A stretch of 63,807 bases of DNA, filler included, from Olpidium bornovanus S191 (lineage: Eukaryota; Fungi; Olpidiomycota), in assembly GCA_017911155.1 (NCBI GenBank). It is 29 parts of 29 records of this genome, joined end to end, with 100 filler letters (N's around TTAATTAATTAA, not from the genome) between each part and the next. Parts side by side here need not be neighbours in the genome. Positions count along the whole stretch, not along the records: positions 41,556 to 43,641 come from JAEFCI010012123.1; 28 more parts are not named here. One strand, given 5' to 3'. Both the position numbers and the translations under genes were made by a program. How positions within the stretch are numbered: position 1 is the stretch's first letter; each line of letters starts with the position of its first letter. Positions 41,457-43,641 of this stretch are shown piece after piece. The notes under the pieces are model-generated. The model did not search any database. It worked only from the letters and a program-made list of their open reading frames with translations, and was not told where the DNA came from.

Positions 41457-41653
41457 NNNNNNNNNNNNNNNNNNNNNNNNNNNNNNNNNNNNNNNNNNNT
41501 TAATTAATTAANNNNNNNNNNNNNNNNNNNNNNNNNNNNNNNNNNNNNNNNNNNNTAATCCTTCCCTGAAGTGTTGTCTTATAGTACAGCCGGGTGAGCA
41601 GCTACGGAGCGGAAGAGCACATTGAGCACATTGCATTTGAAAAAACCTCACGG

Positions 41654-42070
41654 GGCCATATGAGAGGACAAACATGGTCTTTGGGCCTAGCAGCACGGGC
41701 TCCGTTATGTCATCGCCGTTTTCATTCCGGCAAACCACATATTCTTCCTAAGGACCCGAGCGACCGTTAGGCGGACCTCGTTCGGGGCATGGAAAAATGG
41801 GATGCGAGCCCATTCGTTGCCCGGCTCCTGGACGGAGTTGTGATCGTTCGCGCCGCCAAGGCCTTGAATAAGCTCCGCGGCTCTGTTGTCCGTCATATAA
41901 AGACGTTTACCCTTGTATGCGGAATCAACACCGCCCTCACCCGGCAATGGGACCCCCGTCTTGCTGCCGCAATGATTATACCCATTCCAAAAATGTTCTT
42001 CAAGCGTCGTCGCAAGCGCCGTACCCCTCTCTCTGACGGACTTTCGAGCTGCGGAATGATCCAGGCTAGC
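41654..42070 (-). CDS. Unidentified multi-exon coding sequence
   Basis: Exon-like open segments (..EHFWNGYNHCGSKTG.., ..EWARIPFFHAPNE, EECVVCRNENGDDITEPVLLGPKTMFVLSYGP) with a CTAAC branch point and GT-AG sites. Family not recognised. Confidence 0.35.
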
Positions 42071-42552
42071 GCCGAAAAAAAAATAATCCGGGAATTCGGG
42101 AAAGTCCTGCGGGCTAAGGGCTGGGTGGAGCGTAACGCTGCGCGTGTTCTGCAATGACCGCACGAACCATCCGAAAGCACTTTCACCTTGGCCCCGCCCC
42201 ACGCCTCCCCCTGCGCGCGCGCGCGAGCGAGTTTATGCTGAAGCGTGAGATGAAATGCAAAATGTGTATTTGTGCGAATGGAGTTTGGTTCGAGATGGAA
42301 TGAAAACAAGCAGATAAACCGGAAGAGGGTGGGCCCTGAGGGGAGGGGCGACCGCGAAATTTTTGCCTGCGGGGAACCCGGCACAGGAGTGAATGACACT
42401 CAGGAAAATAGAAAAAAATAAAAAAGAGAGAGAAGAGAGAGAAACCGGGCGCCGCGTGCGCAGATATTCGATGCTAAGCTGCTCCCGAGGACGTCCCCGC
42501 CTACTTTCTTTTCCTTCGCTTTTTTTTTCTTTCCCTTTCCCGCCGCCCAAAT

Positions 42553-43049
42553 CTACAAGATTGTGCAAGTCTTGGACTTTTTGCCCGCCGCCGACGGGGC
42601 GGCGGCGTCCGAGCCGCCGGCGGCACCCGCTTCGGCGCCCGTGTCGGCCGTCGGGGAAGCCGGCCCCTTGCCCTTGGCGCCGCCCTTGGACTTTTTGGCC
42701 TTTTCCTCTTTCTCTTTCGCCTTGATGGCGGCCTTCTCTTCTTTGGCCTTCTCTTTTTTCGCTTTTTCCGCGGCCTCCTTCTCCTTTTTGTCCTGGCCCT
42801 TCTTTCCGGACTTGGGAGCGTCCGCGGGCGCGGGTGACGCGGCGGAGGCGCTGGACGGCGAGGCGGAAGCGCCGGGCTGCGGGCCCGCGATGGCGAGGCC
42901 CCCGGGCTCGGTAGGCGGCTGGTCCGCGGCTGCGCTCTTGCTTTCGTCGGCCGCGGCGTTCTTGTTTTCGTCGGCCGCGGCGCTCTTGTTCTCGTCGGCC
43001 GCGGCGCTCTTATTTCCGTCGGCGGCGGCGGCGGCGGCCGGCAAGGCGC
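42553..43049 (-). CDS. Putative terminal exon of guanylate kinase: AAADENKS repeats, K/E-rich segment, polybasic CaaX (KKSKTCTIL)
   Basis: Acceptor CCCAG with an upstream CTGAT. Phase 1 matches the GUK donor at 43219. The frame is open to TAG at 42553. Confidence 0.7.
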
Positions 43050-43211
43050 CTGGGCAATCAATGCCGCGTTTGGCATAAACGCGCGGGGCATCAGTCCAAA
43101 CTGTCTGGCTCGCGTGGGGCCAGCGCTGTGTTGCGAGAAAAAGTCGATTGTGACGAAAAACGAATTTCCGCAGAGGGAAGGAGGAGTGGGGCGGACGTTT
43201 TGCCGTGATCA

Positions 43212-43641
43212 TCATTTACCGGTGATGCCGACGACGTACTCCTTCAGCTGCTTGTAAGCATCGTCCAGAGACTCGTTGACGATCACCAAATCGTGAGTTC
43301 CGGGCTGCGCGGCGTATTCCAGCTCGGCTGTCGCCATGGCAAGGCGGTCCTTGATCGCCTGTTCCGTCTCAGTGCCACGCTCACGCAAACGCTGTTCCAG
43401 CACGTCCACCGAGGGCGGCTTTATGAATACAAACCGGGCGTTTAGGTCGGTGTTTTTGACACTTTTGACTCCCTATGTGTTGACGTGCCGGACGACGTTG
43501 CATTTCAGGCCTTTGTCGGCTTTGGAGGACGTCATCCCATTTGGCCATTTGGGATTTCATATCCCCTGACGAAAAGGCCTACACCCCCCCTCCTCACGCA
43601 CAAGTCACCCTTCATTCTCCCCGCACTTACCTGCATGTCAA
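43212..43641 (-). CDS. GUK1: Guanylate kinase C-terminal part, 5' partial
   Basis: DMQ|GVKSVKNTDLNARFVFIKPPSVDVLEQRLRERGTETEQAIKDRL..DLVIVNESLDDAYKQLKEYV. Confidence 0.95.

Follow-up and report, generated by a model that had tools for sequence, protein, structure and literature searches.

The fungus Olpidium bornovanus S191 carries a guanylate kinase (GUK) gene in which a donor-like splice site overlaps the stop region. According to our analysis of the sequence, a candidate 170-nt intron that begins at this site can be expected, with moderate confidence, to join the kinase to a further exon of 164 codons. The tail encoded by this exon is predicted to be mostly disordered and ends with a polybasic stretch and a CaaX box having Leu at the last position (CaaL). 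The gene lies on the minus strand of contig JAEFCI010012123.1 (assembly GCA_017911155.1), whose 2086 bases correspond in full to positions 41556-43641 of the window, i.e. of the whole 63,807-nt stretch of DNA that was analysed. All coordinates refer to the window, and all parts of the gene are on its minus strand. The contig is nuclear, and the guanylate kinase gene on it, of which the 3' half is present, is a normal one. An earlier note on this DNA had proposed the intron, the tail and, resulting from them, a soluble and a lipid-anchored form of the enzyme.

The upstream gene encodes a guanylate kinase

Judged by its C-terminal half, the upstream gene belongs to the guanylate kinase family, which is in line with the earlier note. 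The last exon of the kinase domain, which extends up to the candidate donor (43220-43472; GVKSVK...EYVVGIT plus a G), matches the Pfam family PF00625 (Guanylate_kin) with 68.7 bits (cut-off 25.2; E 6.8e-19) at profile positions 104-179 of 182. Its alignment with GUKs of fungi and holozoa is collinear across the intron junction, and its identity to the GUKs of Tieghemiomyces, Capsaspora and other members of these groups is 57-67%; the identity to the deposited O. bornovanus protein BJ554DRAFT_4126 is 100%. There are 21 invariant columns in an alignment of seven GUK sequences, including R31, R35 and the TETE positions, and the conserved lid segment RLRxRGTETE is found in the Olpidium exon. The period-3 power of this exon is 4.4, compared to a shuffle mean of 0.76. 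Enzymes of this kind catalyse the reaction GMP + ATP -> GDP + ADP and are treated as freely soluble housekeeping enzymes.

Upstream of this exon there is a confirmed intron of 158 nt (43473-43630, CAG|GTAAGT...CACATAG), the donor of which matches the consensus at 9 of 9 positions. Its excision restores the conserved DMQGVKSVKNTDLNARFVFI in the alignment with homologues. The preceding exon is cut by the contig edge, so that only its end is present (43631-43641, ...DMQ), and DMQ followed by GVKSVK aligns with DIDMQGVKSVK of the homologues. The contig ends at this point (43641), and the N-terminal exons of the GUK with the P-loop and the GMP-binding half are outside the piece.

If read without further splicing, the exon at 43472-43215 (GVKSVKNTDLNARFVFIKPPSVDVLEQRLRERGTETEQAIKDRLAMATAELEYAAQPGTHDLVIVNESLDDAYKQLKEYVVGITGK) ends with ...EYVVGITGK, followed by the tandem stops TGA TGA (43214-43209). 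This is the same C-terminal end point as in the homologues, and the stop is therefore preceded by a complete kinase domain. Should the candidate intron be retained, two stops in a row would lead to efficient termination. The letters of the two stops also form ATG ATG in the frame of the tail.

A candidate intron overlaps the kinase stop

The proposed donor, CCG|GTAAAT, is part of the sequence GGTAAATGA at 43220-43212. It starts at 43219, in the context ACC G|GTAAATGA, and overlaps the stop region of the GUK. The acceptor CCCAG|GC is located at 43054-43048, with its AG ending at 43050. The candidate intron between them (43050-43219, 170 nt) contains a branch-like CTGAT at 43094-43090, which is a perfect match to CTRAY and has its A 41 nt from the acceptor. 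The phase is 1 on either side, so that G and GC form a Gly codon, and no stop arises in the spliced product. All the elements named in the earlier note, i.e. the donor, the 170-nt intron at 43219-43050, the CTGAT, the acceptor and the shared phase 1, are present on the minus strand. It was also correct that, at the sequence level, splicing removes the stop and adds 164 amino acids (aa) encoded by the 492 nt at 43047-42556. The junction expected from splicing 43220|43049 is GTCGGCATCACCG|GCGCCTTGCCGGC.

Splice compatibility alone is weak evidence, since 708 in-frame GT/GC-AG combinations are present. More informative is a scan of both strands of the contig (4172 positions) for the donor consensus CAG|GTAAGT with GT fixed and at least 7 of 9 matching positions. 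It revealed two sites, the proven GUK donor (9/9) and the proposed donor at 43219 (7/9). The chance that the sole extra donor-like site falls within the interval of approximately 25 nt, in which its use removes the stop and keeps the domain, is about 0.6%, and the agreement in phase with an acceptor at the onset of coding adds a further factor of about 1/3. The confirmed and the candidate introns are alike in length (158 versus 170 nt) and in GC content (0.54 versus 0.55).

For the analysis of coding potential, we used a codon-position nucleotide model trained on the GUK exon only. For the gap between the GUK and the tail (43215-43051, 165 nt), the three frames yield scores of -0.26, -0.34 and -0.40 bits per codon, and there is no period-3 signal. 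In this the gap resembles the confirmed GUK intron and the region past the tail stop, which are non-coding in all frames. The coding signal rises at 43060-43045, which corresponds to the proposed acceptor.

Several other routes into the tail frame were considered and rejected. Among the other donor-acceptor pairs, GGA|GTACGT at 43239 matches the consensus at only 5 of 9 positions, and its acceptors are located away from the onset of the coding signal. A small first exon within the gap would have to begin at one of the ATGs at 43215, 43212, 43091 and 43076, and the sole GT after 43091 leads to an intron of 31 nt in the wrong phase. In the case of read-through, translation would have to continue past two stops and on into an R/P-rich frame that scores as non-coding. 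Frameshifting would lack a slippery heptamer at GGTAAATGA, and even after a -1 shift the non-coding gap would have to be translated.

The proposed tail exon and its coding signal

The tail exon (42553-43049) consists of the remainder of the split Gly codon, 164 codons (43047-42556) and the stop TAG (42555-42553). It encodes, in this order, four repeats, a P/A/S-rich stretch, a K/E-rich block, a G/A/K/P linker and the terminal KKSKTCTIL; the four repeats, the K/E segment, the G/A/K linker and the KKSKTCTIL before the stop had been listed in the earlier note. The repeats (42932-43030) are 24 nt long and encode AAAD(G/E)(N/S)K(S/N); Tandem Repeats Finder reports a period of 24, 4.1 copies and 89% matches. 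The K/E-rich block (KKEKEAAEKAKKEKAKEEKAAIKAKEKEEKAKK, 42691-42789) is predicted to form one helix of 33 residues. In the AlphaFold2 model, which was calculated from the single sequence and has a pTM of 0.21, this helix spans residues 172-204; the pLDDT of the block is 63-77, and elsewhere in the tail it stays below 50. Outside the K/E helix the spliced tail is thus predicted to be mostly disordered. The block may be compared to ER/K-type single alpha-helices, with the limits that its 33 residues are K/E/A-rich without Arg and that the helix was predicted from a single sequence at the low pTM given above.

The tail is very probably translated. In the tail frame the scores of the four segments (the repeats, the P/A/S stretch, the K/E block and the end) are +0.79, +0.26, +0.78 and +0.28 bits per codon, and they are negative in the other two frames. 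In each of the segments the period-3 signal exceeds that of at least 997 of 1000 shuffles. It keeps one phase over the 164 codons, and this also holds for the two non-repetitive segments. Together, the scores and the comparison with shuffles support the earlier claim that the tail is coding in this frame and the gap is not. The open reading frame (ORF) alone proves nothing, since this GC-rich region is open throughout in three frames of the minus strand and in one of the plus strand.

The tail frame does not contain a Met codon downstream of 43212, and therefore a canonical route to its translation needs an upstream exon; the only one available is that of the kinase. Further, only 165 nt separate the GUK from the tail, compared to approximately 1 kb past the tail stop (41556-42552), where no coding signal was detected in six frames. 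This fits a single transcription unit.

The plus-strand ORF at 42563-43078 was rejected as a gene. It shares the third codon positions of the tail, encodes an F/L/S-rich product, has neither a Pfam match nor an ATG start, and was judged to be an antisense shadow.

The tail ends with a polybasic stretch and a CaaX box

If the frame is translated, its end C-T-I-L-TAG has a Cys at position -4, an aliphatic residue at a2 and Leu at X, directly followed by the stop. The polybasic stretch and the box (KKSKT-CTIL) correspond to positions 42556-42582. Three of the five residues preceding the Cys are Lys (GKKSKT-CTIL), which makes a stretch shorter than in K-Ras4B or Rsr1p. The Cys of the box is the sole Cys of the spliced tail. 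As a control for chance occurrence, the ends of 396 stop-to-stop ORFs of at least 30 aa from approximately 20 kb of other fungal loci were inspected. A Cys at -4 was present in 10 of the 396, a loose CaaL/F in one (approximately 0.25%), and a polybasic stretch before the box in none.

The standard substrate of geranylgeranyltransferase type I (GGTase-I) has a CaaX box that ends with Leu and is preceded by basic residues, a pattern that normally drives binding to acidic membranes. The end of the tail fits a GGTase-I-type prenylation substrate, and prenylation and membrane targeting are predicted from this motif. The view of the earlier note that the polybasic stretch and the CaaL represent a signal of the lipid-anchor type gains support from the experimental use of the -CTIL box: it is the box of yeast Rsr1p, functional in a yeast membrane-recruitment assay (PMC4358939), and also the box of rice OsCML2/3 (PMC1797041). 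The plant GGTase-I (PGGT1) prenylates Leu-ending boxes only (PMC3017772).

Evidence against the splice model and alternative explanations

The splice model rests on one sequence; it is internally consistent and statistically better than chance. Several observations weigh against it. The proposed donor is without G at +5, and the deposited annotation stops the gene at GITGK and leaves the tail unannotated. The source assembly is fragmentary and was binned from a metagenome (PMC7865070). The tail consists largely of triplet-based repeats (GCC runs, the 24-nt repeat, AAG/GAG runs), and since such repeats yield a period-3 signal even if they are not translated, this is a caveat on its coding evidence. 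A word-index search of 5.8 billion clusters revealed no homologue of the tail, a HMMER search of 1.8 billion representative proteins gave only a chance match to the repeats, and a degenerate DNA scan of the JGI metagenome contigs yielded nothing. For the tail exon, the splice sites and the CaaX box, no relative that would show conservation was found in any of the searched collections. The spliced junction, searched as 26 nt, was not found in the JGI metagenome contigs, which may hold no Olpidium RNA. In none of three fungal loci (Tieghemiomyces and two other fungi, with no closer Olpidium relative among them) is there a CaaX-ending ORF within 1.5 kb downstream of the GUK.

The tail does not match any Pfam family, and an exact look-up of the 220-aa ORF that is open in the tail frame showed that no such protein is on record. 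Since even this genomic ORF is absent from the records, it is evident that, apart from the NCBI assembly, no Olpidium reads are contained in the collections. A real tail would be an addition specific to this lineage.

The HMMER match mentioned above is to a protein of 312 aa (P0033, E 5e-4) with seven tandem AAADQNKS or AAAEQNKS octapeptides, the composition of which suggests an AT-rich genome. Its unit is nearly the same as AAADENKS of Olpidium, and the match is limited to the repeats. We rejected it as a homologue of the tail; probably it is due to chance or to convergent low complexity.

Three other explanations of the tail region have to be weighed. It could be untranslated, GC-rich triplet-repeat DNA of low complexity in the 3'-UTR of the kinase or in a spacer, and then the ORF, the donor and the CaaX box would be coincidental. 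The open state of all three minus frames and of one plus frame, the large share of triplet-based repeats, and the missing homologues and annotation are in line with this. We nevertheless consider it unlikely, because the same period-3 phase is kept over 164 codons in four segments including two non-repetitive ones, because a model trained on an independent exon gives positive scores in one frame only, and because a polybasic CaaL is found exactly at the ORF end, where even the loose form is present in about one of 400 cases, and contains the only Cys of the spliced tail.

A slightly lower probability is given to a separate protein of 220 (or 219) aa starting at the ATG at 43215 (or 43212), for which either a transcript of its own or re-initiation past the stop of the kinase would be needed. 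The earlier note had mentioned such a separate or coupled ORF as an alternative, and it was right that the tail frame is open through the intron from the ATG at 43215: the frame runs from ATG ATG (43215/43212), straight after a TAA (43218-43216), to the TAG at 42553, with an ATGA overlap and with no need for splicing. However, the idea is weakened by the first 55 codons, which score -0.26 bits per codon, show no period-3 and are non-coding by these measures in every frame. In addition, the promoter would sit inside the kinase gene, and the record holds no protein of this sequence. Termination-reinitiation is also unusual for cellular eukaryotic genes. Quite improbable, finally, is the idea that the tail is a separate gene and that a fault of the assembly conceals its true start, the fault being either an indel of 1 nt in the (GCC)6 run or a chimeric join in the gap. 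An indel in (GCC)6 would link the ATG at 43091 (MPRAFMPNAALIAQ..., in the next frame) to the tail frame; the ATGs at 43091 and 43076 are located just upstream in this adjacent frame, the segment 43090-43046 scores +0.14, and the assembly, a metagenome bin, consists of short contigs made by MEGAHIT. This explanation, however, requires an unobserved error and leaves only approximately 120 nt for the 3' end of the kinase gene and a promoter, the score over the 14 codons is not significant, and the gap contains no repeat suggestive of a join.

Proposed mechanism

We favour the joining of the kinase and the tail by the 170-nt intron. A GT-AG intron at 43219-43050 would start inside a Gly codon, two codons before the kinase stop, and its removal would fuse the complete kinase domain to one further exon of 164 codons. 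KKSKT-CTIL would be geranylgeranylated and then proteolysed and methylated, and together with the basic residues the modified end would hold the enzyme at an acidic membrane. The spliced product would be a guanylate kinase tethered to the membrane on a long flexible leash of approximately 160 residues that includes the rigid K/E helix. A possible role of the anchored form is the local regeneration of GDP and GTP at the zoospore membrane: GDP, and hence GTP, might be regenerated near membrane G-protein or cyclic-GMP machinery. In this mechanism we infer the splicing itself, both isoforms, the prenylation of the Cys and the physiological role.

More doubtful is the proposal, also made in the earlier note, that this one gene gives both a soluble GUK and a GUK isoform whose anchor is used, depending on use or retention of the weak terminal intron. 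The weak donor (GTAAAT) may sometimes be skipped, and then the retained intron would lead to an end at GITGK with two stops and to the usual soluble enzyme. In fungi, alternative splicing most often takes the form of intron retention, and the weak donor and the tandem stop are compatible with a two-isoform design. On the other hand, a stop soon after the donor is also common in constitutive introns.

Comparison with known systems

The Olpidium exon shares the PF00625 profile, the lid segment and the end point with the GUK1 enzymes of yeast, Tieghemiomyces and Capsaspora. The known GUKs that we retrieved have lengths of 150-245 aa and a stop after the domain; a long C-terminal extension or a CaaX box is present in none of them. 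In a search of the literature, no description of a prenylated guanylate kinase turned up, and among the papers retrieved there is no earlier report of an orthodox enzyme of this family with such a probable lipid-anchor extension.

The prenylated calmodulins (petunia CaM53, rice OsCaM61/OsCML1 with the box CVIL and OsCML2/3 with CTIL) are similar in that a small soluble protein has a C-terminal basic extension and a Leu-type CaaX box, and the CTIL of OsCML2/3 is identical to the box of the Olpidium tail. The localisation of prenylated calmodulins depends on prenylation (PMC1797041). Their extensions are short, basic and in the normal frame, whereas in Olpidium a spacer of 164 aa would be reached only by removal of a stop-containing intron. 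Small GTPases such as yeast Rsr1p (-CTIL) and Cdc42p (-CAIL) share with the Olpidium protein the flexible C-terminus and the basic residues, and the box of Rsr1p is the same (PMC4358939). In contrast to them, the Olpidium protein has no G domain, and its tail is far longer and has no sequence relationship to any GTPase.

A parallel in gene logic is the cryptic peroxisomal targeting of fungal GAPDH and PGK, which reportedly results from alternative splicing or stop read-through, as Freitag, Ast and Boelker are said to have described in Nature in 2012. The likeness is that a soluble housekeeping enzyme gains a C-terminal signal by bypass of a stop at the level of RNA. The GAPDH and PGK cases differ in that the signal is a short peroxisomal tripeptide, which is conserved and was experimentally shown, whereas in Olpidium it is a predicted lipid anchor on a long spacer in one species. 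Membrane-associated guanylate kinases (MAGUKs) also have a GUK-fold domain that is held at the membrane, as is predicted here. MAGUKs, however, are scaffolds of animals that lack catalytic activity and carry PDZ and SH3 domains. The GUK of Olpidium is of the orthodox enzyme type and without PDZ or SH3 domains, and it is not a MAGUK.

If the two-isoform reading is true, the anchored form would be the first catalytically orthodox guanylate kinase with a lipid anchor. A prenylated GUK would imply that a flagellated fungus of an early-diverging lineage can recycle guanine nucleotides locally at a membrane, and the lipid anchor would join the short list of C-terminal targeting signals that metabolic enzymes of fungi gain by stop bypass at the RNA level.

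The deposited gene model

The assembly GCA_017911155.1 is a metagenome bin from non-axenic zoospores, assembled by MEGAHIT into short contigs, and was annotated by MAKER with ab initio predictors and Trinity transcripts (PMC7865070). RNA-seq data from the same isolate S191 of O. bornovanus were already published (Chang et al. 2021, PMC7865070). The single annotated gene on the contig is BJ554DRAFT_4126, with 106 aa at 43548-43212 on the minus strand. Its start ATG is located inside the real 158-nt intron, and the conserved segment GVKSVKNTDLNARFVFIK is read out of frame. The frame is then repaired by a biologically implausible "intron" of 16 nt (43434-43419, GTTTGTATTCATAAAG). The model is an artefact at the 5' end, and at the 3' end it is probably incomplete. 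Since it is clearly faulty, its 3' end at GITGK carries little weight. The locus illustrates how low-complexity terminal exons are lost in the ab initio annotation of fragmentary assemblies.

The remaining part of the contig

In the region 41556-42552, long ORFs of 165, 168 and 122 aa on both strands were considered. A gene in this region was rejected, since a coding signal is missing in six frames and there is no match to a Pfam family. Either this long region is untranslated or intergenic, or it holds something that crude models miss. No tRNAs were found on the contig, and all Rfam matches on it are far below the gathering scores. One of them is a partial match to U6atac snRNA on the plus strand at 41665-41746 (18.7 bits, gathering score 33, E 0.079), which covers only the 3' two-thirds of the model and is most likely due to chance.

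On the minus strand, the segment 42400-42552 is without coding signal and probably represents the 3' untranslated region. It contains a purine tract (GGGAAAGGGAAAGAAAAAAAAAGCGAAGGAAAAGAAAG) and, approximately 70 nt further, a pyrimidine tract. The two can pair to form a hairpin of -52 kcal/mol, which is not better than that of shuffled sequences (z -1.76), and it was rejected as a structured element. The purine/pyrimidine hairpin explains the sub-threshold matches to plant microRNAs (Rfam MIR408, 27 bits versus a gathering score of 64).

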